Counted from the first letter of the stretch, positions 10,903 to 57,290 are shown. The stretch: 64,000 nt of DNA from Andalucia godoyi And28 (GCA_009859145.1 VRVR01000055.1:136927-200926), one strand, 5' to 3'. The notes: a model not told the origin generated them from the letters alone. Program-made: numbers and translations.

Positions 10903-11487
10903 TCATGGTCCTTCCGTTTCTTGCGTCCAAACGCACTCTTCCGCCTGCAGAAACGCTTCCCGCGACTGCTCGAACGCGTCTGCGGCCTCGGCTTTCGCAA
11001 TCTCCTCGGCCTTCTGAATCAGTTCCTCGTGCTCCGAGCACAGACGCACTCGCTTCCGCGCCCTCTTGGTCTCCTCATTGACGTATTCCTGCAGTGCATT
11101 CGCGAGCGTTGTGGACGTGCCCGCTTGTAATTTGCGGTCCAGAAACGCGAGCAGCGATTCCGTCTGTGCCGGTCGTCTCGGCGGTACTTGCAATACCACC
11201 GCGTCCATCGCCGCATCCTCGGCATCTGGATTGGTGAATCTTGAATTCATAAACCGTCCACCGGTGCTTTCGCGGACTTGCATACTCAAGTCGATGTCTT
11301 TCTTGCTGAACTTTGGGCAGTGCATCGTGACGACCAGCATTTCCGAAAACTCGCCCGCATACGGCACCGAGCGAAACAGGCGATTCACACCAGCATCGAG
11401 AACCTCCGATTGACGATCTTTCAGTCGCTTCCGATCTCTGTGTGGAATATTCAGCAAAGACGCGATTGCACGGGTTGTCATCGACAT
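10903..11487 (-). CDS. 194-aa hypothetical protein, head-to-head with topo II; paralogue of 35529-36113
   Basis: Both copies start MS.TTR, are 194 aa, are about 80% identical by eye and stop at the same position. Conserved intact frames support a real gene. Confidence 0.7.
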   Translation of the reverse strand: MSMTTRAIASLLNIPHRDRKRLKDRQSEVLDAGVNRLFRSVPYAGEFSEMLVVTMHCPKFSKKDIDLSMQVRESTGGRFMNSRFTNPDAEDAAMDAVVLQVPPRRPAQTESLLAFLDRKLQAGTSTTLANALQEYVNEETKRARKRVRLCSEHEELIQKAEEIAKAEAADAFEQSREAFLQAEECVWTQETEGP

Positions 11488-11701
11488 TTCTTTTGAACTC
11501 AATCGAAAGACCTGAAGAAGAAGAAAATGAAAACAGGAAAGAAACAGAAACATTTTGACGAGTCTGAAAAAACGGGGCATCAAGTGACCGGTAGATCACC
11601 TGATTTTCCCGACTCACATACTCACAGAATCCGCCTTTTCCTGTTTTTCATGTTTTCCTTTTTTCCTGTTTCTCCAAAACTCTAAACGGTGCCTCTCCCA
11701 C

Positions 11702-14700
11702 ATGGACACCACTGCTGCATCTTCTTCTTCATCGACGTCCCGAGTGCAAATTCTGGATCACCGGGTGCACATTCTCACTCGCCCAGACACGTATGTTGGC
11801 GCGCTCACGGTCAAACCGGTCGAAGCATGGATCTTTGACCTGAACACACGATGCATGGTCAAGAATCCGAATGTGCAGGTTTCGCCGGCGCTCCTGAAGA
11901 TTTTTGACGAGGTCCTCGTCAATGCCTCGGACTTTGCAGTGCAGGAGCCGCGCGTCACCGAGATTCGAGTCACCATCGATCGAAGCACGGATTCCATTGC
12001 GGTGTACAACAATGGTGGGTGCGTGGAATTGCAGCCGCATCACCAGAGGACCGATTTGCACGTCCCGGAAGTCGTGTTTGCGGAGTTCATGTCCACCTCC
12101 AATTTTGAGGACAATACGGCGCGTGTCGTGGGCGGACGCAATGGGTACGGTGCCAAGCTTGCCAATGTGTTTTCCAGCCAGTTTTCGGTCGATCTGTGTG
12201 ACGGCACAACTGCGTACAAACAGGTGTGGCGCAGCAACATGAGCGAGCACACCACACCAGTTTTGACCCCAGCAGAAGGGGGCGCTGCACCATCCGTCTA
12301 TGTGACCTTCATTCCCGACCTTGCGCGAATGGGATTGGAGCACATCACGGACGATCTGGTTTCGCTGTTCTTTCGCCGGGCACTGGACGTCTCGGCGTAC
12401 CTGCACATGATCGGACGCAACGTGCGCGTGCATTTCCGGTGTGGTTCCGAAGGATCGTGGACGCACGATTTCAACTGCTCGAATCTGTTACCGACAACGC
12501 AGCAGTATGCAAAAATATTCTTTCCAGATGCCGTATTCCTTCCCATCGTCGCAAATCGACTGTCGGTGGCGTTCTCCATCCAGCCGCAGGGCCGCGAGCT
12601 GCAGCAAGTGTCCATTCTGAACGGCATATTCACGTCTGCGGGCGGCGAACATGTGAAGATGATCATCGATGGGCTTTGGAATGGTGGTCTAGCGGACGAA
12701 ATCAAGAAGAAATGCCCGAATGCGAGCCTTACGCACTTTCGCGCCGTCATGCAGGTCGTCGTTTGCTGACAGTTGCACAACCCCGAATTCTCGTCGCAAA
12801 CGAAGGAAGAGTTGACGAGGTTCCTGAATCTTTCTGAATCACCCGTGTGGAACGGAGGGCTTGCAAAGCAGACTGTCTACAAAACTGGTCCAGAATCGGT
12901 TCGCGGAACAGGTCACGCAGACGATCATTCAAAAGCTGAAGCAGGACGACATCCGCTTTTCGAATCTGCGCCTCGGCAGTGCTCTTGATGTGCCCAAGCT
13001 GCAGAATGCGGCTCTTGCGGGAACAGATCAGCGACGCCAGTGTTCGTTGATTCTGACGGAAGGCGACTCGGCCATGGCGCTGGTGAGCAATTCCTTGTCG
13101 ACCGATCAAAAGAAGCACTTCGGTGTGTACCCGTTGCGAGGCAAGTTTCTGAATGTCTGCGAAGTCCCACGGGCGGACGTCTTGGAGAATGAAGAAGTGA
13201 AGAACATTGTGCGGGCGCTCAATCTCAGCTTCGATCTTGCTTACGACAACGATGTCGAGTTGGATACGCTGCACTACGGGCATGTGGTTCTGATGACGGA
13301 CCAGGAGCACGACGGGCTGCACATCAAAGGTCTGCTGCTGAACTTCTTCCAGTTCTTCTGGCCGCACTTGGTTGTTCGCATCCCCGATTTCCTGAAAGAA
13401 CTGCGCACACCCATCATACGAGCAGTGCATTCGAATGGCAGCGATTTCTAAGAGTTCTTTGCGCTGCGGCAATTTCGAGCGTGGTTTGAAGGGCTGTCCG
13501 TGGACGAGCAGCGTGCGTGGCGCGTGAAGTACTACAAAGGACTGGGGACCTCGACGACGGAAGAGGGGCGTCGGTACTTCGAGCATCCACAGAATTATGA
13601 ACGCTCCTTCCGTTTCGCGGACACCAACCGGGCGATGCTGGATGTCTTCTTTTCGGGAAAAAAGGTCGAAGAGCGGCGCAAGACACTAGAAGAGTGCTGG
13701 AAAGAGCAGGAAACCGTCGATGCTGCGCTGCTCGATGTCAGCATTTCCGAGATTGCCGCAGAATCGATCTCGATGGACCACTTCCTGCAGAAGGAGATGG
13801 TGTCCTCCAGTCTGTACGACTGCATTCGGGCGATTCCAAATGTGTTGGATGGACTGATCCCTGCGCAGCGCAAGGTGCTGTACACGCTGTTGCGACACGA
13901 CGGCGATGGAGAGGACATGCGCTTGTTGGAATTGATCGGCATGGTAGTTCGACAAACGAAATACCACCATGGCGAGGCGTCGCTGGGCGAGACGATCATC
14001 GGCATGGCACAGTCGTTTGTGGGCAGCAACAATGTTCCGTTGCTTGTGCCGGTTAGCCAGTTCGGAAGCCGACTGATGGGCGGCCAGGATGCTGCGAAGC
14101 CGCGGTACATTTTCACACGGCTGGATCCATCGCGCGCATCCTGTTTCCGATGGATGACCTCGCTTTGTTGTCGTACTTTTCAGAAGAAGGACAAAACGTC
14201 GAGCCCAAAGTCACGCTTCCCATCATGCCCATGATCCTTGTGAATGGCGCAGGGGGCATTGGGACTGGGTTTTCGACGGAGGTACCGACCTTTCACCCCG
14301 GCGACCTCGCCCAGCGCCTGAAGTCGTTCCTCCTGGATTCTGCGTCTTCTCCGACGGAAGGTGAGTTGGACTGGTATGAGAAACACTTTGGCATGGGTTG
14401 GGCACCGTGGTATGCAGGCTTCACGGGGGAAATCGTTCCTTTCGATGGAACTCCATGTTCATGGGCGAACTTTGGTCGGGTGAAGCGCGATGGCCCGCAC
14501 ACGCTGCAGATTTCGGAGCTTCCGATTCATACATGGGTTCAGCCGATGTTTGAGCAGTTGCAGAGGTGGATGGTGGACCGCAGCTTGAAGAACAAAGTCG
14601 GTCCATTTCACGATGCGCAGAATCTCAGCGAAGAGAATCGCGTATGCCTGCACATCCAGTTCCATAATTCAGAAGATGCCAAAGACTTGATGCGTCGCGA

Positions 14701-15430
14701 TGTATACAAGCTGATGAGACTGCAAAGACAGGTGTCATTTTCAAATGTCCACCTGTTTTCAACGGACAGAGAGGGCCTTCGAATTCGCAAGTTCGCGCAC
14801 CCATGTGACGTCCTTCGCGTCTTTGTGCCTGCTCGACTGGAATTGTATCGCCGTCGCAAGCAGATGATTCTCGAGCAAAAATGGTCAGAAGCAGCTCGAC
14901 GTCGAAGCATTGTGCAGTATGTTGAGAATCGCTCCTTGGTGCAGAAAGTGGTGCGCGCGAACCTCGATGGACTTGATCCATCACCCGATCTGGAAGCAGC
15001 AGGGCTTGCAAGAGTGAACGGGTCGTTCGACTATTTGCTGCGTGGTCTGAATGTAGCGTCGGTGCGGGTGGAGGAGGTGCGGGTGCGAGCGTCTGCCAGT
15101 GAAGAAGTATGTCGAGAGTTGGAGTCCAGGGGTGCAGAGCAGATGTGGATCGCCGAATTGGACCGTTTCATGCAAGAATGGAAAGCTCGAATGCCGGAGA
15201 CCGTTGTGGAGGGCGCGAAGTTGCCGCGGAAACAGAAGACAATGCAAGCGCCTCCGGTTATGAAGCCGCCGAAACTTGAAAAACCGGTAGCTCTTGGAAA
15301 CACGAAGGAGCGCATTGCGTCGCTGTTTTCGAAGAAGCAGGCCGGTCCACGGAAAAGAGCGCACAAGGATATGTCATCCGACGAAGATGATTTCGAAGAT
15401 GACTTGAGTGTTCCTGATATGTATGAATGA
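11702..15430 (+). pseudogene. TOP2: type IIA DNA topoisomerase, intronless and compact (virus-like); 2 in-frame stops and 2 frameshifts
   Basis: GHKL motifs (KIFDEVLVNASD, VYNNG, GGRNGYGAKLAN), TOPRIM motifs (LILTEGDSA, PLRGKFLN, MTDQEHDG.HIKG), KYYKGLGTS, DGL.PAQRK, YHHGE and active-site FGSRLMGGQDAAKPRYIFT. Lesions: TGA at 12767, +1 in G-run ~12858, TAA at 13449, -1 at ~14127. Confidence 0.93.
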
Positions 15431-15573: not shown

Positions 15574-17819
15574 ATGGTTCCCGGGTTGCAAGTGGGCGCA
15601 CCTGCTCCTTGTTTTCTTGTGCTCTTCGCTCTCCCATGTTTGTCGACTATTCTCGTCGTTTTCCTTCCAAACAAGATGTACTCCGACTGCTCTATTTCCA
15701 ACAACCACATAAAATACGTCTCCACCCTCCCGCGGATGAACTCCATCGTTGACTTCGGAGACATCGATGCTGCTGTGCATTCCGTTCTGCACCTCCTTCA
15801 AACGGATCCGCAGAATGCACGCCTCGCAGCCGTTCCGCTGCGGATTCGTACGGACTATCGATTCGTAGCCTCCCTGTTCACCAGCGCCCCTCGTTTCTTG
15901 GAGGAAGTGTTCGAAATTCCGTGCGCACTGTTCCCCCAGTTGCCCACTTCCCAGAACGCCGAGGCCGCAGATTCGGTGATCTTCCTGCTGCGGCACAGTC
16001 CGCGATACGAAGAACGAGCTTTGACATTCTTGGACGAAACTGCTCTCCCGGATCTCGAATGGCAGAGAATCGACCCATGCATTCTAGCTTACATGCCCGG
16101 AGTGCTGGGAAATGTGAGGTTGCTCGAAATGGTCATGTGCAGCCGCCAGTTTCCAACTGCCCACATTCTCTTCTTGCTGAAACGGTCCTTCGAACGCTTT
16201 CCGGAACAAACAGCCGCTCTTCTGATCGAAGAGTCCGACTGCGGTCTACTCTTCCATTTCCACCAAACCATTTGCAACGCTATTGCACAGGGACGCATCA
16301 CGGAAGTGCGCATTCGGCAAATTCCGTTCGTTGGGGCAGAAATAATTCTCGCATTGAGCGTTTGCTGTCCTGCACTCCTCCAAGCCAGCATGCCTTCTTT
16401 CCAATCAGCCATGCAGCGAATGCACTTGCCGCGACCGTGGGTGTGGCTCGTGCGCGCGAGCATACTGGCCCGATCCGACGAGGACCTCCTTCATGTTGCC
16501 GAGCTCTTGCTGGAGCACTTTTCAACGCGAGGAGTGCGGCTCTACTTTCTGTTCAACGCCTTCAACATGAGCAACGTCGCTCTGGCTCAATGGATGATCA
16601 AACACTGTCTCATGGACGCAGAGCGAATCTTTGCCACCTCGTCCTTTCCGAATGTCTTGCAAGTAACGATGCCGCCCGACAAGCTGTTCAGCATGCAAGA
16701 GATGATTGCCTTGTTGGATCGTATTCTCGCGAATCCGTTTGTCATTGCTTCGGACGCTCTCTGTTTCGCAGCCTCCTTGTCGCCACGCCTGTTGGAAGCC
16801 AAAGGCGTGCGGGTTGCATTCTTCGTCGACAACTGGATGGATTCCACTTCACCTCCTCGGCTTGATGCGTTGTCTGCCCTCCTCGATGTCACCGTAAGTG
16901 ATCTCATTCTCAGTGACGAGGAAGTGGAGAAGCTTGTGCACATCTCCATTCGGAATGAAGAAACAGTGCGATTAGAAACACTGGCTCAAGGTTTTCGAGC
17001 AGATTTGTCGGATCCAAAATACTGGAGTTCCATTTCGAGCCTGGGGATGCTGCAGTTTCTGACGGAGGAACTCGGCGTACACGTGCGATGGCCGACATGG
17101 ATGAAGGTGCCAGCGGCGCTCCGCAAAAGCATACGAGACGGCGAACAGTCCGTTCATGCAGACACGTACGAAGCGTGCGCAGTGGACCATTCGTGCGCGG
17201 CTGCTGGAGGACACAGACCCCGTGGAGGCTGATGTCTCACGAGTCCTGGCTGCGAATCCTCCAGCAATGCAAAAGTATTTTCGATGGCAGAGTGTACACA
17301 ATAATGTGGTGTTGTTTCTCACGTCCTTATTCAAGAGGATGGGAAGCCCAAGTGATCTCGCAGTGGGTACGCTCCGTTACCGCACATAAGAAGATGTGGA
17401 GAGGGATTTGCAAGTTGCGATGGTAGACGCAGGGTCGAACTGGAGGATGCTCATTCTGTTCCTGTCCATCTGAGGGCAAAGCGGAAACGGCTGGCATGCC
17501 AACATGCTGGTGATTCAACGGGAAACGGGAGTGGTAGTGCGATTCGAGCCGCATGGTCACCGATCGCCGAGTCCATACATCGATGCGTTCATTGAAGAGA
17601 CGATTCTCCGAACTTTGATATTGTGCGAACCAACAGGACGATTTGCGTACCGCCGATTGGGCAGATACTTGTCCGTATCACGGACCGCAGAGGAAATCAG
17701 ACGCTGTGACATGGGCGGACTTGGACTTGCGCGAAATGGGTGGGTACTGCGCGGTGTGGTCGCTCATGGCCATTTCACTTTCTCGTCCTTCATCCCCACT
17801 GGAGTGTGTTGGAGTGTAA
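15574..17819 (+). pseudogene. large helical-repeat-like protein with C-terminal clan-CE-like (Ulp1/adenain-order) cysteine protease domain
   Basis: Joining frames gives ...MLILFLSI*GQSGNGWHANMLVIQRETGVVVRFEPHG (17492-17548), then after a frameshift TCPYHGPQ...GGYCAVWS (~17656-17765), i.e. His-Glu-Gln-Cys order. Stops at 17387 and 17471; +1 in A-run 17125-17128. Confidence 0.65.
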
Positions 17820-18020: not shown

Positions 18021-18236
18021 TGTCACAAAGGTAAGAAAGAAAGAATGAGCACAGATCAGCAGACCCGCTTCCTTAAATACTCCGACGGCAATCCGTGCTG
18101 CTTCAAGTCTGACGTATCACGCCGACTATAATGCCGATGCCACGTGCCATGCCGATCGTAACTCCGGTCGAGTTCCCTTGAGTCGCTTGAGTCGCGATCT
18201 TCCAGTTCCCACACCTATATAAGGACTTCCGTCACA
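18021..18236 (-). repeat. LTR (216 bp) of Ty3/gypsy element
   Basis: Bounded by TGTCACA...CGTCACA (TG...CA on both strands), contains TATATAA, abuts the pol fragment, and is homologous to 34329-34528. Confidence 0.6.
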
Positions 18237-19442
18237 TGATGCCATTGGCGAGAAGCGCATCAACCTGTTCGTTCATGATTTCCTGATTTTGCGATGACAG
18301 GCGGCGAGGGGCAAAGGCGTGCGGTTGCGCTCCCGGTTTCAGCGTGATGTTCATGGGTCTGACCTTGGCAGGCTCGGAATCAGGGTTCTCAAAAAGGTCG
18401 GAGTACTCAGCACAAAGGTCCTGGATACCCTGCTGTAGGGGCCCCGGAGCGATGAACAAATCACTATCTTGGTCCTCCGACGGAAGGGAACGTCGTACGA
18501 TGGAGATTCCGCTTCTCGAGCGGCCGGCTGCTCGACCAGGAGAGAAAGCAATCCCGTCGACTGGAGAACAGGAAATCCGATGATCGCATCTTCCCCAGAT
18601 TCCAGGACGAAGAAAGAAACATCGATGGTCACAGCGCGGGCAAGACTGGGCGGAGTGCCGGTATTGACTGACAACTTGCAGGTAACCTCTTGCGAGGAAA
18701 CGGTGGTCTGTCCTGAGGCGACGGCGATCTCTCGCGTGCAAGGGCGGACGATCACGCCAATCACCAACATCTGTGAGAGTAATTTAGGCGACATCAGGCA
18801 AATGGAAGATCCTGTATCCAAGAGAGCTGCAACCCGAACGGATCCCGTCCATCCGAGAATCTTAGCCGTGGTTCGTGGTACAGTTTCCGGAGCGGTCGTT
18901 GCGGATTTTGCTTGAGCTTGGTTTGTAAGAGGCATCTTATCCAACCGGGTCCCGATGCGTTGCCAAACTTGGCATGTCCTTGAAAGGACAGAAAGGGCGT
19001 AGATGGCCTGGATGGCCGCATCCATAACAGACCTCCGACGAGGTCAATGGTGCAGAAGTACCCTCCAACGGTATGGGGCATGAGACGGAACCTTGGGGGC
19101 CTCACTCTTCTCGGCGCGGATCCTTGGTAACGACGAGCAATGTACTCCGGGATGTGTCACCGACGAGGAGCGGAGACGTTCCGCTTCCAAAACGATTTTT
19201 GTGAGTTGCTCAACATCTTCCAGAACAAAGATTTTAGCCTCCTTCAAGCTCGTCGGATGACGGAATGAGACATGATCCGAGAGTCTCTGCGGCCGCAAAT
19301 TCGTGACAAATAACTTGCGGAGTGCTTTGGAGTTGGCTCCCAAAGCATCGGAGCACACAGCCTCTTCCTTCTCATACTGCGGTATGTAGGTCATCACAGA
19401 ATCAGTGTTGTGCATGACAGTTGATGGCAAGTGATATGTCAT
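18237..19442 (-). mobile_element. Ty3/gypsy LTR retrotransposon remnant: gag C-terminus, CCHC knuckle, aspartic protease, RT N-terminus
   Basis: CYGCGHPGHLRPFC zinc knuckle (~19030-18990), VAALLDTGSSICLMS protease motif, and EYSDLF...MNITLKPGAQP..FAPRRLS...MNEQVDALLANGIM typical of the region just before RT. Frameshifted and truncated at 18237. Confidence 0.85.
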
Positions 19443-19868: not shown

Positions 19869-22800
19869 ATGCCCAATATTCGCTTTACAATCACCGACAA
19901 CTCCGGGTCTTTGTGTCAAGACCGTGTATCCATCCCATGCGCCAATGGAAAGGCGTTTGCTTCCTGGATTTCCTCCAACGTGTTCGCGGGCTTCCCGAAA
20001 CAGTCCCGTGGCGACTTGCTGAAGATCTTCTTTGGGCACTTGGTCTGTTTTTTCAAGTACGGGATGTGGCTGCCACGTTTCTATCTGGATCGCTTCGGGA
20101 AGCCCTGCGGAATCGATCTGTCGCGCTCATTTGAAGACATCGGCCATATGTTGCAAAGCAATGCAGACGTTGAAATCGGAATCAAGTTCGCGACGCATTC
20201 GTACTACGCTCTTGTGCGCGGGTATGAATTTGCCGAGGAGAAGCATGTGCAGCACGTGCCGTTCGAGTATCGCCACTCCATTTGTTGCGCATTCATGTAC
20301 GTGGAAGAGAGCCATCGAAACTCGCCCGTGTTCGAGTGGCGCCAATACCGCATCATTGACGCTGCATCGGCGAAAGAGACGACGTGTGCGCTTCCGGTTC
20401 CTCTTTCCAAGTTTGCCGCGTTCACCGACTTGAAGACGTACTGCGAAATCTCTAAAAGGGGTCGCGACGACACGGCCGCGCTAAAAGCACAGGTTACGGG
20501 GCTCTCCGTCTATCAAGCAATCCACTTTGCGTTGCACAAGGAAAATCTGAACACGAAGATCGTGGGAGCTCTTGCAGACGGCCCGAAGATCGAGGTGTAT
20601 CTTTCCAATGGTCTTCCAAAGGACAAGATGCGTTCGTTCGACCTTTTCGATGTCTTGCAGCTTCGCTACATCCCGCATGCAGAAGACTCTGTGCGTTTCG
20701 TCTGGCTCCAGCGGACGCAGACGGGCGATATTGACGCAATGCGCCTTGCCAAACGCGAAAATCGCTTCGGGGGCATCGAAGAGGCACAACGTGTCCTCGA
20801 CAGATCAATGCGGTCTGTCATGGATTATCGGGTGCGTTCCGGCGAAAAGTTTCTTTCGGAAGAAAACACCATTTACTGGGAGACCCGGTTTGGAGAGCGA
20901 GCCGATGCGCGCAGCCATCTCAACGCCGTGTTTGCGAACACTCCGTATGTGCGGTCCGACGATCTAGCAGTGACCAATGCGAATCGGGGATACGGCGACA
21001 ACTTGCGGGACCGTCCCTCGAAGGTGGTCACTGCGTGGTGGAACAACGCGCCTCTCCAGATGATCCATTTTATTGGGAAGGATGCTCCCGAAATCAATCG
21101 CGTCAATATGGGGCGCGTTGGCTTCGCAGAGGGCGCGGCGACGCTTGAGAAAGCCGAGCGCGACGAAGACGTGCCAATCGCAGATTACATCCCTTGTGTC
21201 CGCGGCCATGTTTCGGCGAAGATTATCCGCGAACACCGAGATGTGTTCGTCTCTACGGTGAAGGCGTGTTGCGTCGAGTATCGAGAATTGTTAGGGTATG
21301 CGCGCTACGCACGCGACCTTTCTGAATTCTACACGCGCTACGAACCGATTATTCGGTCGCTTGTGACAAACAACATCGATGCGATGAAGTCGGAGTTGGA
21401 CCAATTGCTCCGATATGTGAAGCCGTTGAAAGATCTTGTCGAAACTGCCGATCTGGTAGACGCCGTGAAGGCGCTCCCCGACGCTGTTGTCTTCAACACG
21501 TATGCGGTCGAAAAGGGCAGTCTTCCAGAAAATGCCACTTTGGATGGCTATGAGCTCCGCATCGCAGACGACGTGCAGACACTGGGAAAGATCCAGGATG
21601 CATATCCGGTCCTGCTCTTCGTGACCGTCGAGCGGATTGCCGAAACGTATGGATCCAGTGAACACCTGGCTGCCGTGAAGCGGATGGCGGACGTTTTCAA
21701 CGACTATCCAATCGGGAAGGCACTACCCACTGGGAGCATTTCGGAAAGCATCCGGAAGCTTGGACATAAGATTTTCGCCGATGCAATGCGCTCGGACGAA
21801 GCAAAGCGTCGCTACCAATCCACCAAATTGTTGTCCAACAAGGCGCACGCACATATGGAAACTGCCGGCGCGTTGTTTCCCGTGTTACATGGTGTGGTGC
21901 GCTTTGGTGTTGCCACCGAAGCAACGAAGGAAGACATTGCCAAGGTTTTCCAATCCGACCTTGCGGCGATTGTTGCGCAGGCAACGGCAATTCGTGCAAT
22001 TCCGTCAGTCGAAGAGGTCAAAACCACGCTCCCAATGGAAGGCGGCGAATGGATCGGATACAACGCGGTGTTGGCAGCACAACGGACGGCTGCGTACATG
22101 ATAGGATATTGGATCAAGTCGTTCAGACTTCGCGATTTCTCGGTTCGCCCAGTCGTCAACAGCGGCGTTGAGGTGCAGGTGGAAACGGAAGACTCGAAGG
22201 CAATCACACCGACATCAGAAGAAGAAGCGCGGATGAATCGCCTTGCTGAAACGGAGTTAATGGTCGCGCAGACACTTGTTTATTTGTACGGAGGCCTCGA
22301 GTCTTCCAAGAATGTGGAAGAGGCGCGCCGGGCTCTCTGCGCATCTAACTCGAAGAGTCATGTTGATGCACTCTCCAACGCTATTCGTTCGTTCTGCGAA
22401 GAAACGAAAATCGAGTACGACGGGATTCGTGCATGGGTCACTCCTGCAAGAAATGTCGGACACACAATGCCCTATGTCGAAAACAGACAGAGTGCATCGG
22501 ACGAACTCATTACCGAATACCGAAACCTGTACAACACGGGGGTCAACGTTGATGCCGTGTTTACGGTCAAGACTGCGGTTGAGATGCTGTGCGCGGCGCG
22601 CCATGCACTCGGGATGTCGTACATCGCAATGGACGTGCATGCCAGGTTCGAAACACATAACATGAAGACGGTGGATTCCGAGAAGAGCATCTGCACGGCG
22701 GCAGTACAGTGTCAGTGGATTGTCATGGCGTTGTACAACATGTTGGAGACGATGGGCGTCATCGATTCGTCACGGGATATTACCATCACCAAGGATCGAC

Positions 22801-27373: not shown

Positions 27374-27416
27374 GCTAATAAATCATTTCGGCGGCAGAGA
27401 CGCCACTGTTCCTCCG

Positions 27417-27882
27417 TTAACAGTTGTGAGTTGCAGTGCATTTCATGACCAAAAGCAGATTGTTTTGGATGCACGGCGTAGTCCACTGCATACTGTAATC
27501 GTCAAGACGTTGGCAAGCCACCGCAAACAAATCTAACTTCTTCATCAGAAGCGCATTTCCATCTTCAGTGACCCGCTGCTGTGATGGCATCATGCTTCCG
27601 TACGAGTCCATTCATAATTGGGCCCAGCTGTGCGTCACAAAGTCGACCAGGTGGCAGAGGGTAGTAGCACGCGAGACCATCGAACGCATTCTCAAGCATC
27701 GGTTGTGTGACAAACAAGCCATCTGCACTATTACCAGTTACTTCCCGACCCGAACTGCCGTCCTTGTCGCTGTCATTTTCAAAGATACGTGGAAGAACAT
27801 CAAGCAGCATGTCTTTCAACAGGGATTCTAAACGATCGATGTCGTCTTCTTCCAAAGTGGGTTTGAATATTTCAGGTAGCAT
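27417..27882 (-). pseudogene. hypothetical protein split over two frames
   Basis: Overlapping ORFs 27565-27882 and 27417-27611 with protein-like composition (LEEDDIDRLESLLKDMLLDVLPRIF). Confidence 0.3.
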
Positions 27883-28348
27883 TGCTCACATTCATGCACT
27901 GAGCTAACTAACAAAAATATGCGATTTCTGGCCAAAAAGCGCTCTCATCAATTGATTCTACGATTGAACGCTATGCAAGAAGAACGGTTTGCGTTGACGG
28001 TATAAAATAAATGACAAACAAATATAATAAACAAATGTTTACTATATGGCACTAGAAAACAAAACAAAACACAAGAAGAGTACAAAAGAAAGAAGACAAA
28101 CAAACAAAAACGATGAAAGAAAGAAGAAAGAAACGCAGGAGCGAGCCCTGCGCGGACAGCGACAGTCGTCGTCCACGACAGCGTGTGGTTGACACAATAA
28201 AAGAACACAGAGTGCTTATCTATCTCCACAATAAAACGAAAGAGAAAAGAAACACAAACACGAACACGAACACGAACACGATGCTAACGGCGAAAGTGAC
28301 TGCAGCAGGCGGCGTACAGTAGGCGCACGCCACAAGCGTGCTCCCGCT

Positions 28349-29535: not shown

Positions 29536-29556
29536 GTGACCAATTACGCCCTCTTA

Positions 29557-44400: not shown

Positions 44401-44941
44401 CACAGAGACCAAGCGAATCAAATGTGGCCAACATGCCGAACATTGTGATCGGGTTGAAGATCCCTCCGTAGTCTTTGATCATGCCTTCCTTCACCCCCAC
44501 GATTTTCGTCCTGTCCACCTCGATCCCGTTGACACGCTGGACATGTTTTGCCCAGTCCTCGATTCTAGTGATCGTGGGAACTTCGTTGACATCTGAGCGG
44601 AATTTTTTGCGAGGAGGTCCTGTTTGGGACCGTGTCCCAAACATCATGTCTCTCGTCATTCCAGCAAAGGAAGTATTCATCGGTTCTCCCGAACTTCCGT
44701 TGATGACCTGCACTAACGCGGCCCCAGGCGATGGAAATTCGTGGATGGATTGGAAAAAGAAGAAGATTCTGAGCTGGCGAAACACGCCGTTTGAATCTAG
44801 AACCGATTCAACGTACGTTTCGGCTCCAACCATGGGTCCGTCTGCTTGAGATGGTGCAAGAACCTCGGAAGGGGTGGATTTTGCAGCAGCGCCGCGATAC
44901 TTCGTCACAGCCAATGCCATTGTGTTGTACACATATGGCAT
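41427..44941 (-). CDS. large P-loop AAA+ NTPase, SF3/MCM-like putative replicative helicase (virus-like); frameshift near 42000
   Basis: 996-aa ORF with RVHPLICGPEDIGKS (Walker A), EIVCTN (sensor-1/motif C-like), SPEIQRLLLL (Arg-finger-like) and MLRKADQIAQMAR (sensor-2-like). No clear Walker B. Overlapping ORF 41427-42155 probably supplies the C-terminus. Confidence 0.6.
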
Positions 44942-46237
44942 CGACTCGCCTACATTGCTTCCCGATGCAAAGTCGCCTATGGTCTTGCCACTGAGCTCAG
45001 ACGCCGGGATTTAAGGACGACAACATGAGCCACGTCCTTCAAAGGGTTTTGAGGACGGGTCCATGCGATAGAAGAACGCATGCCCCATGTGTTGGGGACC
45101 CATTTTGCAGCTGGGAGGGACGTGACTGACATGATATTCACTCTGCAAATCTAGCTGAAAGCAAACTGTGTACCGAACAAAAAGAAAACGAAAACGAAAG
45201 AAGAAGGGGAAAAAAGCGTCCGGATCGTTTTTATAGGACTCGACTCCAAACCCTAGCACTCTGCCAACCCTGGGCATCAACAATGCTAGCCGTCGGCAAC
45301 CCTAATGGACATAACCCTATGGAATCCTTCTTCGTATATCAATGGAACACATCAGCAGCACCGCCCTATGGAAAAGTCGTCGACTGCGGGTCCTCTGGTC
45401 TTTGAAACCTGCAGTCTCGTCCAGAAAAGGTGTGAGTGCATGCAGTTCCTGTGGCACTGTGGATATCTGGATCCAGTCAGCTTCTGATTCTGTTTGTATG
45501 CAAGACTGTCCTTTTGGAGACTATGTCCTACTATCAGAAGAACTGTACATAGAGCTGCAGATATGGAGGCTGCATCTATTTGTATTCAGTCAGCACTGGT
45601 ACGGGTCCGGTGCATATGCACGCTGGACTTACAAACAAAACATGATTGATGATATTCTAAAACGGACATTCGTAAACTCTGTGTGTCGTCGAGAGCTTTG
45701 TACTCTCCATTCGGCGATCTCATTCTCGCATTTTGTTCCGATGAAAGCGAACAATGTGGAAGTGGAGAGGAAGGTATTTCATACTCCACACAAACACTTC
45801 TCAAGGTCGGTACGGACGAGCATGATCTCGCAGCAGAGCGGTCCACCGGACGTGCAGCCCACTCGCTGATGCTTGATACGAGACCCTTTCATGTATTCTC
45901 TCGCTTCTTGGCAGCAAGCTCTTCGTTCCGTTACGCTCAATTGTTTTTGTTTTGTTTTTTTTCAAATTCGAACCAATCGCTCCATATTCAAATGACAGAT
46001 GCTTTCATCGCTGTACTAGTAGCGCACGGCCCTGTGATGGCCTCTTTCGTCCCTTACCGTGGTCGGTGTTTCCTCTGTGCCGCCTTTTCTCTGTGTTGGC
46101 TCATGGAATCTACAGTGGAACTCCCTGTTTCTGCTGTTGCACTCTGCAGAGATGAGTGATTGCATGCTCTGCAGGCTCCAGCTGATGCGTCTTATGTGAA
46201 TTCAGGATGCCTCGATAGAATGCACACTCCTGCAGCA

Positions 46238-46421
46238 TACACGTCGGTCTGCTTGTTCGTATCACAGAGCACCACGGTGGAAGCAATGCTATGTGCCATG
46301 TCGACGTGCGCACCAAGCAGCGTTCTCTATGTTCTGTTCGAAGATATCAACGCGTGGGAACGCCTCAAGAATGAAAGGCTGTCTATTCCGCAAATGTTGT
46401 CTTCAGAATGCGCTGAATGGG
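46238..46421 (+). repeat. 184-bp identical block, duplicate of 49050-49233
   Basis: Base-for-base identical from TACACGTCGG to GCTGAATGGG; the flanks on both sides are homologous but diverged. Confidence 0.9.
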
Positions 46422-47390
46422 GTGACGTGGGGATTGACGGTTGACAGGCCGCAACGATTTTTGTTCCTCGCAGAAAGAACAGGCGTATACGAGGGAGTGC
46501 TTCTCCTAGTGCCGTGGGATCCTCAAAGCTCATGTCGACAAATGGCAACATCAACTTGAACCTCTGTGGGTCGGACCTCTAGTGAACACCTGTTGTAAAT
46601 GAATTTTCCGCCACCACTTGAAGTGAAGGATGTCTCGCTCTGTTGCGAGCATTTTCCAAAGGGAAGATGGATCGATGGGGGATCTTCGAGGGTGCCCCTG
46701 GGTTTTTTTTCTCCCTTCCACTTCTCAAATTCGCATTTTCTCTCCCTTCCACTTTTTCCATCGTGGCGTTTTTTGTTTTGTTTTTCTTCTTTTTTCTTCT
46801 GCCTATTATTTTCGCCTGGGTTTCCCATTTTGCAGAATGCAGTCATTGTGACAATCGCACACAGCGCCGGCGTAGTGGCGCTTTCATGCGGAGCGAGTCG
46901 GTGGATGGTGAATCCGCGGGGGGCGCGGACTTCGCAGACTTTGGATGGAGAGAGACTGCGTAATTTGCAAACGATCGTCACACAACGGATGTGTGCGCCA
47001 AATCCCATGGCATCCAAAAACAACCGTGTGTGCGCGCCGTTCATAATGGGTGTGCCGAGCAGCATGTTGGAAACCTAGGTTACCGGCGTCACCATTTATG
47101 CAGAATTGTCTCAGTGCATCGCAAAGGTTTGTCAGCAGTCCTCTTCATTTGCGGTCGAGGTCCTCTAAATAATTCTGGAGGAATGGATCGGAGAATCTGA
47201 TTCCAGCTAGCATCAATCCTTGGTGCATGGAGCGCTGCGAGGTCTGCGAACCCTGAAATCCTTGAATAGGAGGAGGATTCTGTCTTCTGTGTCTCGTCCG
47301 TTCGTTTTCATTTTTTCTTTCTTTTTTCCCTCTTTCCTTTTCTTTGTTTTGGCTTTGACTCTTTATTCCGCTTCTTCACCTGCTTGCGCT

Positions 47391-49256
47391 ATGTCATCGT
47401 CTGCGGGCACGAAAGAGCGCATCAAGAAGACCATCTTGTGCTTGTCGGTTGACATAGAGAGCCCCCTGCTTCCCACCAGTGATGATTCCGTCACGTACGT
47501 AAATGTACTGGAAGAACGAACGTTCGAACATGATCAATCCTGTACACTCTGTTTGAGGGAAGCAATGGAAAGATGGACAGGTGTACTAGAAGACGTGATT
47601 TATAACTATCGACCACTTCAATCGAAAGAGCAAGGCTTGTCGAGCAACACTGCGGGGAATGAGGCGCAAGACGATCAGCATCCTCCAGAGCCGAAGAAAT
47701 ACAAAAGGCGGAATGACAGGCACAAACCTCTCGCTGATCGGATAGAAAAGAACCAAGATGGTACATGCGTGAGGACGGTGCGTGGGAAGTTCCCTTGTCG
47801 CAGTCCAATGTTCTTATTAGCATTGGTTGTGACGGTTCCTACCGAAACGGATATGTCATTTTTTCAATACCGTTTGGATCGTCCGCTTCCACTGGCCGTG
47901 CAATCACTGAACTGTAAGAAACGGTTTAAATCGATTAGGCCTCTGATCCGATTTTGCTCAAAACTTCTCGAAAACGATGGTCTCATCAGGCGGGGCCGTT
48001 TGACCAATCGAGAAGCCGTGGACAGCACCATGTGGCAGTATTTCATGAAAAACGAGAAGCATTTGCCGGATCTGCTGTTGCACTTCCAATTATCCGACCT
48101 CTATCCTGCACAGTATCCAAGGTGGCATTCGAGCAATGTGCAAGACTATATTATGACTCTGGGACTTGAAGCGCATTCATGTCAGCAGCGCTGTCTGGAA
48201 TGGGATGTGGCGCCGTGGTTTAGAGATTCTGCAGGGACGGAGGAAGCAGAAAGCGACGTGAAGGCGCGCCTTCTGGAGGAGAGGATCGGAACAGATATTG
48301 CAAAAACCTCCGGCATTGTGGTGGTCCCGATGGCCTCGACTATTCCGACTCTGCGTGCATTCTGTGATAAGATCCCCGCTGAGGCTGACAGCAGGCAGAC
48401 TACATGTGTGCTGCCAAATCAGGCGTCAAAATACGCAGTCCTGAGAGATCAGACGGATTCGAGGTTCTACGATCTGTCAGAGATGGTTTCGGCACTTGTC
48501 AGCAGCCGATCCGCTTTGAAGGCGCGCGTAATCGTTCCATTTCTTCATCTTTGGACACCGCGCATGCTTCGCATCCTGCTGGGCATCTTGGATGGACAGT
48601 CCCTTCTCATTCTCTTGGTGGACCCCGTGATGTACGACATGGCGACTCCTGGTAGGTGGCTCATCAGACATTTGTTAGGATTCCAACATGTGAGAGACTG
48701 TGTGTCGGAGCAGTATTGCAGCGACGATTCAATCGAATCTATCACGGTAGGCCATCCATGCCTTTCATGGATTCTAGGGGGACACTCGTTGCACACAAAG
48801 ATTGACCCACCGATAACTTCTGTAACCCATGGCAGAGGTGCGTGCAGTTACACTGCATTGTCTTCTGTGGAGCCTGCTACTCATATCCATCTAGACCCAC
48901 GTGCCTTGGAAACGATACCGGTTTTTGTGACCAACATCACAGAGGAGAAACCGATGCTCATGCGGTTGCTAACGCGACTGCCAACTGGCAGCCCATTTTC
49001 ATCTCCACGAATTGTGTGCATTGAGGCGGGACGACATACCCCTGCAGTCTACACGTCGGTCTGCTTGTTCGTATCACAGAGCACCACGGTGGAAGCAATG
49101 CTATGTGCCATGTCGACGTGCGCACCAAGCAGCGTTCTCTATGTTCTGTTCGAAGATATCAACGCGTGGGAACGCCTCAAGAATGAAAGGCTGTCTATTC
49201 CGCAAATGTTGTCTTCAGAATGCGCTGAATGGGATGACGTGGGAATTGGGCATTGA
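47391..49256 (+). CDS. hypothetical protein with degenerate RecD/SF1B-helicase-like C-terminal half
   Basis: Intact 621-aa ORF. RMLRILLGILDGQSLLILLVDP...PGRWLIRHLL resembles the RecD region around motif III, and VEAMLCAMSTCAPSSVLYV resembles motif VI. No intact Walker A or B. Confidence 0.4.
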   Translation: MSSSAGTKERIKKTILCLSVDIESPLLPTSDDSVTYVNVLEERTFEHDQSCTLCLREAMERWTGVLEDVIYNYRPLQSKEQGLSSNTAGNEAQDDQHPPEPKKYKRRNDRHKPLADRIEKNQDGTCVRTVRGKFPCRSPMFLLALVVTVPTETDMSFFQYRLDRPLPLAVQSLNCKKRFKSIRPLIRFCSKLLENDGLIRRGRLTNREAVDSTMWQYFMKNEKHLPDLLLHFQLSDLYPAQYPRWHSSNVQDYIMTLGLEAHSCQQRCLEWDVAPWFRDSAGTEEAESDVKARLLEERIGTDIAKTSGIVVVPMASTIPTLRAFCDKIPAEADSRQTTCVLPNQASKYAVLRDQTDSRFYDLSEMVSALVSSRSALKARVIVPFLHLWTPRMLRILLGILDGQSLLILLVDPVMYDMATPGRWLIRHLLGFQHVRDCVSEQYCSDDSIESITVGHPCLSWILGGHSLHTKIDPPITSVTHGRGACSYTALSSVEPATHIHLDPRALETIPVFVTNITEEKPMLMRLLTRLPTGSPFSSPRIVCIEAGRHTPAVYTSVCLFVSQSTTVEAMLCAMSTCAPSSVLYVLFEDINAWERLKNERLSIPQMLSSECAEWDDVGIGH

Positions 49257-50874
49257 CAGACCCCAACAATGCTTCAGAGAACAAGCAATAAAACAATTTT
49301 GCGAATTTCAAAGCATATTCTCGGCAAACGAAAAAGCCAACTGGATGGATTTTGCAGTCGAACTGGTTGAACGAGAGTCCCAGACGGGCGGGCAGACGGG
49401 CTTTCAGACCCTCCTGTTGTAACATGTTTTTTCCGCCACAACCTCAAGTGAGATTGCTTGAGTCCCTCGCGGGGCATTTCTCAAAGGAAAATCGAGCCCA
49501 AGTTGTCTTGTCGAAGAAAGACCCAAATTTTTTTCATCCTGTTTTTTCCCTATGCATTTCTGACTACGGCGTTTTCTTTCTTTTTCTTCTTTCTTCTTCC
49601 TTTTCTGCATTTGTTAAGACTAAGTTTATTTCACGGAGTACTCCTGGGCCGCGCGTTATCTTTTGGCTTTTCCGTTTCATTTGAGTTCCGGTATTGCAGA
49701 ACGCTCTCATTGAGGCGGTAGCGCGCCGCGCCAACAGAATGACACTCTCGTGTGGAGAAAGTCAGTGAATGATGAACCCACGAGCGCGATTTCCGCGTAT
49801 TTTAGGACACAGAAAGATTAAGTGAGTTGCAAAAGGACTGCCACAACGGAAGTGTGCATCGACCCCGTGGACGCTGCTCAAGAAGGACGCACGGAGAGGT
49901 TCGCTGAACGCCGAGCTTTCCAACGTCACTATTCGTGCAAGAACATCTCGTTGCATTGCGGGGGCCAACACAGTCGATGTGAAGTATTGCACCGATACAG
50001 CATAATAAGAGACATGCTTCGCATTCGGTCGCTTCCAGAGCATGATGCATCATCTTTTTTGTATAATGTGTCTTTTGCCTTTACGGGAGTGGATTCGTCA
50101 TCGAGCGCGTGGCTCCTCTCCAATTTACAGACGACAAGGCTCGTTGAGTCCTTCTTCTTGCTAAAGATAAAGCCCTGAAGCTCGCGCAACAGCTGGTTCA
50201 TCAGCACACGGGTGTTTGGGCTGCTTCCACCGGATGTGGATACAGCACCGAGGATGACACGAAGTACAGCCTTGCATCAGTCGGCTTTCTGGACACGGCT
50301 TCTACGAGGTGCGAGATTGCGCGAAGACAGCAAAAAAGGCGGGCTCATTCTCGATCCCGGCAGAAGGTGTTGGATAGCATCAATTGACGCAGGTTCCGAT
50401 CATGCCCAGCCTGCGCATTCTTCTTGGGGGGTTTCTCGCTGCATCATGAAAGCTGCTTCTCTTACTTATTTATTTTTTTAACAGAGTTGCGCTTCGCCCC
50501 CCGAAGACTTTCCCTTGGTGTCTTCCTCGTTTCGGGGACATGTTCCAGCAGCCAAGCATGCAGCCCACGCCCACCTCCCACTTCCGCTTCCGCTTCCACT
50601 CCCGCTCCCGTACTCACACCCACATCCAGTGCGCCTCCTTTCGAGTAGAATTCCCTGGGAACGCTAGTATAGGCAATGCTTCAACAGGCGCAGTCAGTCC
50701 AGCCAGTCCAGCAATCCCACGAGCAGCCATCTCCAGCACAGCCCCGTGCACGTCATCAACAAGTTGCTCCGCAGCTCGTACTAAGCCATCCTGTCGATGG
50801 ATTCCGCACATCGGTGGATGTGAGTTTGCCGTGAACAATGCTGTGAGCGGGCCCGTTCGCTGCTGCGGTTCGGA

Positions 50875-53035: not shown

Positions 53036-53050
53036 TAATAAAATTAAAAT

Positions 53051-53631
53051 AAAATAAAAAATCAGAACGACTGTAAAAAACAAATAGGGAAGGGGGCCGG
53101 GAAAGAGGCGACGGACGAAAAAATTTTTAATTGGGAAAATGGAAAAAGTGCGGGCTCAGACATCGCCGGATCTTTTTTTTAATTAGTAGAAATCGGAAAA
53201 TGGGAAATTTGGACCCCTCCCGGAAAGCTGTGAGCCCGCTGAGCCCGTGAGCCCGCTGAGCCCGCAGCTTTTTTTTTCTCCTGGCTGTGACAGCCAGTGA
53301 TTGGGCCTGTACTAGGAAACAGGGGTCTGGTCCCACCGTCCTGGTCACACGTACGGGCGGATGGCGTGCTCGCACACCACCCCTGGTGGTGGCACACCCA
53401 TCATTCTTGCACGGGGAGAGTGGCTCCGGCGCGAGCTGGAGCAGCCTCCACCATCGGAAGAGATTCCCATCAATTGTCTTGTTAAAGATGGATGGTAGCT
53501 ATATTGGGAACATCCGTTCCGAATCTAGCTGACATGCAGGCAAGGATTGACTAAATGAGAGATGCATCTCAATTGGGAAGCAGCCACGCCCTAGGCTTTG
53601 CCTCTATTTCATGTCATCCACTCCTTCCTAA
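53051..53631 (+). repeat. left arm of 580-bp near-perfect inverted repeat
   Basis: Reverse complement of 54972-55551; the only difference I found is T9 versus A8 in a homopolymer. Confidence 0.95.
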
Positions 53632-54971: not shown

Positions 54972-55551
54972 TTAGGAAGGAGTGGATGACATGAAATAGA
55001 GGCAAAGCCTAGGGCGTGGCTGCTTCCCAATTGAGATGCATCTCTCATTTAGTCAATCCTTGCCTGCATGTCAGCTAGATTCGGAACGGATGTTCCCAAT
55101 ATAGCTACCATCCATCTTTAACAAGACAATTGATGGGAATCTCTTCCGATGGTGGAGGCTGCTCCAGCTCGCGCCGGAGCCACTCTCCCCGTGCAAGAAT
55201 GATGGGTGTGCCACCACCAGGGGTGGTGTGCGAGCACGCCATCCGCCCGTACGTGTGACCAGGACGGTGGGACCAGACCCCTGTTTCCTAGTACAGGCCC
55301 AATCACTGGCTGTCACAGCCAGGAGAAAAAAAAGCTGCGGGCTCAGCGGGCTCACGGGCTCAGCGGGCTCACAGCTTTCCGGGAGGGGTCCAAATTTCCC
55401 ATTTTCCGATTTCTACTAATTAAAAAAAAGATCCGGCGATGTCTGAGCCCGCACTTTTTCCATTTTCCCAATTAAAAATTTTTTCGTCCGTCGCCTCTTT
55501 CCCGGCCCCCTTCCCTATTTGTTTTTTACAGTCGTTCTGATTTTTTATTTT
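54972..55551 (-). repeat. right arm of 580-bp near-perfect inverted repeat
   Basis: See 53051-53631. Confidence 0.95.
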
Positions 55552-55672
55552 TTCTTCCCTAATCATTTTACATCATGGAGCAACATCCATCCGATGGTGC
55601 TTCGATTACAAATGAGCTTGAGTGGAACCCGAGCTTGCGCAATACGTAGGCCCACGTGTAAAGATCTGTTGG

Positions 55673-57290
55673 TCACCTTTCCATATCCTCGCCATAAATG
55701 CGCTTGTCTTTCGAAAACCCAAACACATTCAAAACTTCGTCCAGTTTGGCGATCCCTGCCGAACTTCGCCACGTTCTACAACTCGTGTAATTACACTTGC
55801 GATCGTTGTGATAAGTGTTGCATTCGTGCCAGTACCTATTGTCATCAGGATCTTCGCGAAGCAAGGCGAACACAAGACGGTAGGGTTCGATTTTGAACGC
55901 CCGCATCGCCGAATCGTGTTTGTAGACGCACATCAGATGATCGGGGGGCGCATGTTTGATGAGTTCGGACATTGGGCCGAAGTCTGCCTCGCTGGAGGAA
56001 TATAAGAACTCCGTGAGCTCGGGTTGGAAATCCAGTGCCAGACGGCATATCTCGGGCGTGAAATCAATCACGTCGTGGAATACCGTGCAGAAATGCCGAA
56101 CCTTATCCATACTGATCTTCCTTTCCGATTCGAGGAGATTGTCGCGGGTCCTGTATGGCGAATTCATCAATGCGCCTTCCAGCACCGCATCTGCGAACGC
56201 AAACACGCGGCCCTCGGATTCTGTCCAGTATTCGTACAGGGACGCGATGGAGCCGAGGAGCTCTTCGGATCCGACAGAAACCCATTGGTTCCGCGAATAC
56301 GGGAGCGTCTCTAGTTTCTCGACCATGATAGGCCCAGTGCTGTTCTCTTCGGTTTCTCCCTCGATCCCCTTGCAAAGCAATTTCATCAACGCGTGCGATT
56401 TGAGAATTTCGTCTGGCTTCTCCCAGCGCCCTGGCGCCGCCGCGATCCACTCTGCGAGCATTTCGGGGCGGATCGCGAATCCGAGATTCGCCATCGTGTT
56501 GATGGCCGGGACGCCGACGTCGACCCATTGCGTCTTCGTCTTCATGTCCGTGATGGAGAACGAACGCATGACGTAGTCGAACATGTGCGCGTCGATCAGC
56601 TTGCAGCTGTTGAGACGGCCGTTGATTGCAGTCACCCAGTGGACCCACGGCAGATCGATGCTGTGCGACGCTGCTGCAACGGCGTCGACGACGGTCGGGA
56701 TTTCTGAATCCGACAGATACGCCATCAACACCCATTCGCTGAGCGGAATAACTTCGGCTAGATCCGATGTGTTCCCCTTGTCTTGCTTCTGCAATTTGAA
56801 CACGGCATTGGCCATCGCCTTCATGAACTCCTGCTTCTTGCGCAGCACGTTCCACACGTACTCGGAGACATCTTTGGTCAGGTCGCCGCGCCAGTCGAAC
56901 ATGCTGAGGCCGACCTTGGAGAAGTACTTCTCCCAGAACCTCACCCGTATGCACACCAGCCCACTGCGTGAAGGGCTTCTTGCGCGTGGACGGGTACACC
57001 GATGGCGTGATTGAAAACAGCGCGCGTGGGAAGCGTGTCGCCGTCTCCTCTTCTGGGATCTTCTTCGCTGTTATGGACGCTTCGCGGATGGCGTTTCCTT
57101 TCTCCCTTGATCTTTTCCCGACAGCTCTCGAAGATGTGCTCTTCGAGACATGTGTTCGCTCTTTCCCATGCTCCACTTCGATGCCGTGGTACTTCTGCTC
57201 GATCTCACTGATTCGCTTGCGTGCATCTTTGAAATCGTGTTGATGGTTCTCATTGCTGATCTGCAATTCGATTAATGGATTCAGCAAGAA
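55673..57290 (-). pseudogene. hypothetical helical-repeat-like protein; frameshift near 56945; 5' end cut at the Mutator TIR
   Basis: A 427-aa ORF (55673-56956) is joined to the upstream protein-like part of ORF 56103-57341, with strongly GC-biased third positions. Its open frame runs into the Mutator left TIR. Confidence 0.65.

Follow-up and report, generated by a model that had tools for sequence, protein, structure and literature searches.

How did broken topoisomerase genes, transposons, and large orphan genes come to lie side by side in the nuclear genome of a jakobid, and was a virus their source? We addressed this question for a stretch of 64,000 nucleotides (nt) of nuclear DNA of Andalucia godoyi And28 (GCA_009859145.1 VRVR01000055.1:136927-200926). 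This stretch is referred to here as the window, and all statements on presence or absence cover it. The segment of interest, at positions 10903-57290, had been interpreted in a sequence-only reading as a decaying endogenous giant-virus or mirusvirus-like element interleaved with host genes and transposons. We found that it contains a repeated unit with a compact, broken topoisomerase IIA (topo II) gene that is neither close to the host enzyme nor to viral ones, an intact P-loop protein of 996 amino acids (aa) with only four known relatives, and several further orphan genes. We interpret the segment as what remains of one or more integrations, the integrated DNA being that of a large DNA virus or virus-like replicon from a lineage that has yet to be described. 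Our confidence in this interpretation is about even, and it does not extend to naming a virus group.

Jakobids are a deep eukaryotic lineage valued for their bacteria-like mitochondria, and no viruses or endogenous viral elements of jakobids have been described in the literature. The A. godoyi genome is compact (20 Mb), the majority of its genes are intronless, and its introns, where found, are of the GT-AG type and 55 to 756 bp long; the assembly is 454 based, and "transposon/viral-like" subtelomeric scaffolds were remarked on (PMC7050145). Viral-like DNA in this organism has been noticed earlier in passing and never described: our literature search returned no paper describing endogenous viruses in A. 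godoyi.

The topoisomerase IIA gene is compact and broken

Copy 1 of the topo II gene is located at 11702-15430 on the + strand. Pfam identified the Toprim, TOPRIM_C, and DNA_topoisoIV domains in that order (E values of 4e-7 to 5e-38) and gave a weak match to HATPase_c. The GHKL ATPase and transducer region is present N-terminally, as seen from a phmmer score of 190 bits against yeast Top2 over ~335 residues. The ATPase part scored ~165 bits against human Top2, 66 bits against the enzyme of African swine fever virus (ASFV), and 56 bits against that of phage T4, whereas the values for the Toprim part were 116 to 130 bits against the yeast and human enzymes and 61 bits against ASFV; the C-terminal part reached 91 bits against yeast Top2. 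Among solved structures, the yeast and human Top2 enzymes are matched best, with those of ASFV and phage T4 far behind, and by these similarities the gene can clearly be assigned to the eukaryotic Top2 type. A short acidic tail is found where many cellular enzymes have a long C-terminal domain.

The homology is split over four open stretches in two frames. Alignments to relatives are continuous through an in-frame stop codon at one junction and through a frameshift at another. At the first junction, the frame changes across a short gap in which both frames are closed; 96 GT-AG combinations would bridge this gap, none of which is compelling, so that the change could reflect a short intron as well as another lesion (frameshift). 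Copy 1 can thus not be read as a single uninterrupted frame, given one in-frame stop, one frameshift, and one further frame change, and in the published annotation, a gene is called only for its last 345 codons. A 454 assembly error could in principle account for the frameshift and is unlikely for the in-frame stop. The intronless, compact topo II that had been proposed for this locus is therefore present, of the eukaryotic type and indeed compact, but not intact.

A unit of ORF X and topoisomerase II occurs twice

Divergently oriented to copy 1 is an open reading frame (ORF), termed X (10903-11583, - strand), with ~190 conserved aa and no known domain. It had no Pfam match, and a search of PHROG gave only a weak match to Ant (E value of 0.005). 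The 220-nt spacer between X and topo II holds a T-rich 8- to 9-nt tandem repeat (TTTTCCTGT, 4.7 copies) at 11636-11675, which could belong to a promoter region shared by both genes.

Comparison of the window with itself revealed a second copy of this unit. It begins with X2 (35529-36269, - strand), a paralogue of X with 82% nucleotide and 77% aa identity, and includes a second topo II copy, of which only the 3' third is left (38080-39114, + strand). A sequence 97.8% identical to the final 1031 nt of copy 1 is found at 38080-39110; copy 2 lacks its 5' 2.7 kb, and a truncated hAT-like transposase fills their place between X2 and the fragment. Gene model ANDGO_07460 (446 aa), annotated as "DNA topoisomerase 2," maps with 100% identity to 37736-39114. 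It is a chimera of 120 codons of the hAT-like transposase tail and the 3' topo II pseudogene fragment, joined over a 35-nt gap that is below the length of every verified A. godoyi intron. Irrespective of any viral involvement, this label is attached to a fusion of transposase and pseudogene sequence. A third topo II copy, ANDGO_07667, is found outside the window and is 77% identical. The topo II gene is multicopy, decaying, and interleaved with transposons. The decay and interleaving noted in the sequence-only reading are thus borne out by the broken topo II copies, a hAT-like element, a Mutator-like element (MULE), and a retroelement relic.

For X and X2, the ratio of nonsynonymous to synonymous divergence (dN/dS) was 0.15 at a dS of 0.70, and the corresponding values for the 3' parts of topo II copies 1 and 2 were 0.29 and 0.05. 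Ratios of 0.15 to 0.29 together with so few lesions (two or three in 3.7 kb) imply that most of the divergence arose while the genes worked. The copies of the unit hence diverged for long under purifying selection, and their inactivation is comparatively recent. Since dS is unequal (0.70 versus 0.05), the two loci are mosaics that were generated by gene conversion or in separate events.

The topoisomerase is distant from both host and viral enzymes

A. godoyi possesses a separate, conventional topo II, ANDGO_07992 (1186 aa, predicted mitochondrial), which is listed in the supplement of PMC7050145. It belongs to the same enzyme family as the window copies and shares their domain order and compact size (both ~1200 aa); the host gene, however, is intact and conventional, whereas the window copies are broken, multicopy, and far more divergent. 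The ATPase domain of ANDGO_07992 scored 314 bits against yeast Top2, as compared to 190 bits for the window copy, and the two A. godoyi proteins share 36% identity in this domain. The window topo II is as distant from ANDGO_07992 as it is from yeast, and a search of the A. godoyi proteome revealed no functional parent copy. We conclude from these comparisons that it is neither the normal host orthologue nor a recent duplicate of it. Whether the enzyme is a normal cellular orthologue had been set beforehand as a test of the viral interpretation; with 36% identity to ANDGO_07992 and the longest branch of 39 sequences, it is not.

A scan of IMG/VR matched 586 giant-virus topo II stretches, the best of which were 35 to 42% identical to the window protein and thus no nearer than cellular enzymes. 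Identities were then compared over 227 conserved columns, using 80 IMG/VR sequences and a set of cellular or unassigned sequences. The window protein shared on average 38.7% and at most 41.4% identity with the IMG/VR sequences and 34 to 42% with the cellular or unassigned ones. In contrast, the IMG/VR sequences were on average 58% identical to each other (minimum, 44%) and 53% identical to the cellular or unassigned sequences (minimum, 44%), and in the same columns viral and cellular/unassigned sequences were 44 to 60% identical among themselves. The window topo II is thus farther from all sequences than viruses are from cells. In quick neighbor-joining distance trees, based on one open stretch of the broken gene, 30 sampled IMG/VR sequences, and midpoint rooting, its terminal branch of 0.77 was the longest of 39 sequences (median of the others, 0.10; maximum, 0.36), and it was placed outside all others in 59 of 60 bootstrap trees. 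This is a long-branch placement and tells nothing about affiliation. The extra topo II copies are best excluded from analyses of eukaryotic or viral topo IIA evolution unless they are handled as long-branch pseudogenes.

A 996-aa P-loop protein founds a very small candidate family

The ORF at 41951-44941 (- strand) is intact and encodes a protein of 996 aa that is identical to a EukProt protein. It contains a Walker A motif, a Walker-B-like motif, a "CTN" motif resembling motif C, and a conserved YYxK, and its Walker A is the only canonical one among all window ORFs of at least 80 aa. No match was obtained in Pfam, PHROG, PDB, or IMG/VR, a tblastn search of phage genomes with the P-loop core gave none either, and in a word-indexed search of 5.8 billion proteins, EukProt proteomes included, the protein found itself only. 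An exhaustive phmmer search of 1.84 billion representatives retrieved two remote relatives, namely, P0040 (1286 aa; E value of 3e-15) and P0041 (1518 aa; E value of 6e-4). A profile search added P0042 (1596 aa), and a scan of JGI metagenomes added one short member (L007), which is truncated by the end of its 4.2-kb contig. A hidden Markov model built from three relatives alone matched the 996-aa ORF at an E value of 2.5e-21 and no other ORF of the window. On these search results, the protein can be considered the founder of a very small orphan family with four known relatives.

The family motifs comprise the Walker A, an acidic motif ~40 residues further on, the sequence hhh(A/C)TN ~85 residues past the Walker A, and the YYxK; they are conserved in three to four members, the Walker A being degenerate in one relative. 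By eye, these motifs resemble those of superfamily 3 (SF3) helicases in order and spacing. Like D5-type primase-helicases and viral SF3 helicases, the proteins are of comparable size and have a central P-loop, this motif spacing, and large N- and C-terminal regions. Unlike them, the family gave no match in profile searches of Pfam, PHROG, or PDB, primase motifs were not seen, and the Walker A of one member is degenerate. Of the SF3/MCM-like AAA+ ATPase that had been proposed here, the intact P-loop ORF stands, with an SF3 motif order recognized by eye only and without support from profiles or structures. The ORF just downstream was considered a possible continuation of the gene and was rejected, since it had no significant similarity to the longer C termini of the relatives.

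Three relatives have readable neighbors. They are encoded on contigs of 22 kb (GC content of 62%; Logan SRR27710300_54507), 103 kb (GC content of 35%; ENA ERZ14705955 NODE_4), and 8 kb, in which intergenic spacers measure 1 to 330 nt and the neighbors are almost all orphans. Exceptions among the neighbors are Skp1, a compact SNF2 helicase, and a >2560-aa protein combining SET and PRMT5 domains, and none of the genes beside the relatives is related to any window ORF. This organization is suggestive of large DNA virus genomes; very compact protist genomes could look alike. On the 103-kb contig, the gene for the >2560-aa protein (L004 18148-24557; PRMT5 and faint SET matches) is located ~3.6 kb downstream of that for P0041, with three small genes between.

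Other orphan genes share a raised GC content at third codon positions

The largest gene of the segment is an intact ORF of 2142 aa (19869-26297, + strand) that corresponds exactly to an A. godoyi protein in EukProt. Its length is far beyond chance, so that the ORFan of this size in the sequence-only reading is real. Searches of Pfam, PHROG, and IMG/VR returned no match, and the protein has neither internal repeats nor transmembrane-like segments. The representative of the 90% cluster that holds it (P0044) is a 56-aa antitoxin-like peptide, encoded on a metagenomic contig of 537 nt, that is unrelated to it, and we dismissed this connection as a clustering artifact. Two further intact orphans lacked matches in the same three databases: orf552 (552 aa; 15574-17232, + strand), located 144 nt downstream of topo II copy 1 on the same strand, and orf427 (427 aa; 55673-56956, - strand). 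Another intact orphan, orf678 (678 aa; 47220-49256, + strand), is found inside a tandem duplication and had no match in Pfam or PHROG. An ORF of 272 aa (26555-27373, + strand) contains three hydrophobic segments and is probably what had been termed a TM2-like gene; Pfam shows no TM2 domain in it, nor any other match.

The GC content at third codon positions (GC3) differed between groups of genes. Values of 0.59 to 0.72 were observed for X (0.60), topo II copy 1 (0.59 to 0.69), orf552 (0.62), the 2142-aa ORF (0.62), the 996-aa ORF, and orf427 (0.72, the highest in the window), whereas the hAT-like fragment, the MULE, and orf678 had values of 0.52 to 0.54. Ten host genes, for which the first 133 codons were pooled, had a GC3 of 0.51 (range, 0.38 to 0.59). 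The raised GC3 may be taken as a modest hint at a common non-host origin, the host sample being small.

Viral hallmark genes and comparison with known elements

Identifiable protein domains are very few in the window. Pfam scans of ~250 open stretches identified no capsid, DNA polymerase, packaging ATPase, primase, RNA polymerase, portal, or terminase, in line with the earlier remark that no capsid, polymerase, or packaging ATPase is visible. The markers of nucleocytoplasmic large DNA viruses (NCLDVs), that is, the double-jelly-roll capsid, PolB, A32, VLTF3, D5, and RNA polymerase, were equally not detected by Pfam. As for mirusviruses, there was no Pfam match to terminase or portal, and the HK97-type capsid and triplex genes were not recognized in searches that did not use mirusvirus-specific profiles. 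Several parts of the sequence-only reading could not be reproduced. The clan-CE protease was seen neither in the ~250 stretches scanned with Pfam nor in structure searches with the C-terminal region of the MULE; the RecD-like relic was found in none of these stretches, the sole canonical Walker A being that of the 996-aa ORF; and the glycosylphosphatidylinositol (GPI) protein did not appear in the same scans.

Within Discoba, the record is limited to Bodo saltans virus and to giant endogenous viral elements (GEVEs) of Euglena gracilis, the latter being the only GEVEs reported in this group (PMC12455990). The segment resembles these Nucleocytoviricota elements in that foreign replication genes are found in a protist chromosome together with stops and frameshifts, duplication, and transposon invasion, and topo IIA is a common giant-virus gene, as the 586 IMG/VR stretches illustrate. 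It differs from them in that no NCLDV marker was detected in the window, its topo II is at most 41% identical to IMG/VR giant viruses and does not group with them, and the 80 viral loci share no neighbor with it. Mirusvirus elements occur in integrated or episomal form in Aurantiochytrium (PMC12606086), mirusvirus genes are found in diverse eukaryotes (PMC10827195), and some mirusviruses encode topo II (PMC12768974). Like the segment, these elements are orphan-rich relics of large DNA viruses in protist nuclear genomes; unlike them, the window shows no recognizable HK97-type capsid, portal, triplex, or terminase gene. Jakobids are mentioned neither in the mirusvirus host range paper (PMC10827195) nor in a survey of endogenous double-stranded DNA viral elements of eukaryotes (bioRxiv 10.1101/2025.04.19.649669).

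Origin of the segment

The scenario that we favor, with the even confidence expressed above, is the following. In the nuclear genome of A. godoyi, the region at ~10.9 to 57.3 kb would be a graveyard for DNA of foreign origin. A replicon module, in which X is arranged head to head with a very divergent compact topo IIA, would have entered or been duplicated there to leave at least two copies that are related yet long diverged, and large orphan genes, including those for the SF3-helicase-like 996-aa nucleoside triphosphatase (NTPase) and the 2142-aa protein, would have arrived alongside. As the source, a large DNA virus or a virus-like mobile element is most likely; it would belong to a lineage still to be described, and its replicon would have carried its own topo IIA and helicase-like NTPase. 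The module is now nonfunctional, with a stop and at least one frameshift in copy 1 and the 5' two-thirds of copy 2 lost to the hAT-like element, and debris of MULE, foldback, and retroelement type is interspersed. We infer that a virus was the source, in preference to a mobile element of another kind or to a gene island specific to the host. Should this hold, jakobids would be added to the hosts of large DNA viruses, and current marker gene screens would be missing the lineage. More tentatively, and with appreciably less confidence, the 996-aa family, the hyperdivergent topo IIA, and the orphans could offer a first glimpse of large DNA viruses or virus-like replicons that infect jakobids and other protists and form an undescribed lineage outside the sampled Nucleocytoviricota, with free relatives represented by the 103- and 22-kb metagenomic contigs.

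A number of findings weigh against a viral origin. (i) The hallmark genes named above are absent from the Pfam results, and three of the parts that had been listed as viral (the clan-CE protease, the RecD relic, and an intact topo II) were not reproducible. (ii) The topo II groups with neither viral nor cellular clades in the neighbor-joining trees, and the flanks of the 80 viral topo II loci contain no gene resembling any window ORF. (iii) In IMG/VR, topo II alone has relatives; there are none for the 2142-aa ORF, orf552, orf427, the 996-aa ORF, P0040, and two alignments of the 996-aa family, and neither the contigs of the relatives nor any member of that family is represented. (iv) The SF3 reading of the 996-aa protein faces a family profile with no PDB match and relatives with no Pfam match, and AlphaFold2 models reached predicted local distance difference test (pLDDT) values of 33 for the protein alone and 40 for its core with a four-sequence alignment, too poor for a fold search. 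(v) Given the eukaryote-type neighbors Skp1, SNF2, and PRMT5/SET, the contigs of the relatives could be compact protist genomes. (vi) The GC3 contrast is based on a small host sample. (vii) Host genes are mostly intronless (PMC7050145), and the intronless and compact nature of the genes is therefore no argument for viral origin. The observation made in the sequence-only reading is thus partly confirmed and its interpretation partly supported: the nonorthologous, multicopy, and decayed topo II is consistent with an endogenous element of the giant-virus or mirusvirus kind, and hallmark genes are missing. There is no positive evidence for assignment to either group beyond the presence of topo II, so that this assignment is a reasonable hypothesis and not a result.

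The same absence of any viral hallmark gene would be expected if the segment were a host-specific, repeat-rich, and possibly subtelomere-like gene island, in which the orphans are lineage-specific genes, the topo II copies are pseudogenized, fast-evolving host paralogues spread by segmental duplication, and no virus was involved. Compact intronless genes and many orphans are the norm in this host (PMC7050145), local duplication is also seen in adjacent families of host type (e.g., the Zn(2)Cys6 genes), the topo II is eukaryotic in kind and belongs to no viral clade, and the relatives of the 996-aa protein adjoin Skp1, SNF2, and PRMT5/SET genes. A fast-evolving paralogue would, however, have to be as far from ANDGO_07992 (36%) as from yeast, beyond the distances between viruses and cells, and its functional parent is missing from the A. 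godoyi proteome search. Moreover, the 996-aa protein found only itself in the search that contained EukProt, its two relatives among 1.84 billion representatives are on contigs from metagenomes or read sets, and the GC3 of the orphans is offset from both the host sample and the transposons. We consider such an island possible, if rather doubtful.

The unit could also be cargo of a large nonviral mobile element, namely, a giant transposon or an integrated plasmid-like replicon without virion genes that carried X-topo II and the orphans. The unit is repeated and diverged under selection, it is closely associated with transposons, and a helicase-like NTPase and a topoisomerase form a replication module rather than a virion module, in line with the lack of virion genes. 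However, the unit lacks a linked transposase, integrase, or recombinase. The hAT-like fragment and the MULE are small elements separate from it; the MULE is bounded by terminal inverted repeats of its own, whereas the hAT fragment has no identified ends. In the self-comparison, no terminal repeats bounding a large element were seen. To our knowledge, no eukaryotic transposon family carries a topo IIA. This origin is therefore judged unlikely. Least of all do we expect the segment to be an assembly chimera or a contamination from another organism, which would be highly improbable. A perfectly complementary inverted repeat of 580 nt and the 454-based assembly (PMC7050145), in which frameshifts could be homopolymer errors, would agree with it; yet the genes are included in the published annotation, a diverged third topo II copy is found elsewhere in the same proteome, an in-frame stop is untypical of 454 errors, and transposons and duplicated families are present throughout the window.

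Transposons, repeats, and flanking genes

The hAT-like transposase fragment (36416-38079, + strand) was identified by its DUF659 domain (Pfam E value of 1e-16) and is directly followed by topo II homology from 38080 onward. No C-terminal hAT dimerization domain and no inverted repeats were identified in it, and it is truncated at the junction with topo II copy 2. The MULE DNA transposon (57293-61769, + strand) has terminal inverted repeats of 59 nt with 97% identity, reaching ~90 nt, and a transposase ORF of 1217 aa (57418-61071); its MULE domain match (E value of 5e-7) is above the curated cutoff, the SWIM match is weak, and no target site duplication was identified. The C-terminal region of this ORF and an overlapping ORF gave no match to solved protease structures and contain no protease domain; whatever is encoded there is inside the terminal inverted repeats and therefore belongs to the transposon. 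At 18354-19043 (- strand), there is a relic of a retroelement-type aspartyl protease, with a match to Asp_protease_2 (E value of 5e-5) exactly at the curated cutoff and neither reverse transcriptase nor integrase nearby. A dispersed repeat of 150 nt with 76% identity occurs beside this relic (18033-18184) and at 34342-34500, and relic and repeat may be debris of a long terminal repeat retroelement.

The tandem duplication that encloses orf678 spans 46223-49867 (+ strand), with copies at 46223-47075 and 49035-49867. Direct repeats of 236 nt are 94% identical, beyond which identity drops to ~30% at the aa level, a pattern that suggests local gene conversion. A NACHT match in the conserved part of the duplication was below the curated cutoff and in a Cys/Arg-rich frame of noncoding appearance, and was discarded as probably spurious. 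A foldback structure is formed by two arms of ~580 nt (53046-53631 and 54972-55556) that are 99.8 to 100% complementary and separated by an AT-rich spacer of 1.3 kb (GC content of ~0.42); within each arm, there is a short tandem repeat of 9/17 nt. The structure represents either a foldback element of very recent origin or an artifact of assembly.

The GC content of the segment varies between 0.42 and 0.56 with no sharp compositional boundary, and neither tRNA genes nor Rfam families were found in the window. The stretch at 27400-35500 is ORF poor and A rich on the + strand, with small dispersed repeats and no recognizable gene; a scan of its 74 open stretches of at least 65 aa yielded no domain. 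To the left of the segment, a host-type ORF of 404 aa (7883-9097) contains an N-terminal F-box (Pfam E value of 1.4e-4) and no other domain. The same flank carries, within 10 kb, four Zn(2)Cys6 binuclear-cluster domains (573-722, 4931-5125, 6747-6941 on the - strand, and 10316-10525) with 40 to 50% aa identity, two of which are in ORFs with significant Pfam Zn_clus matches. They represent the local expansion, in a jakobid, of a transcription factor family of the "fungal type."

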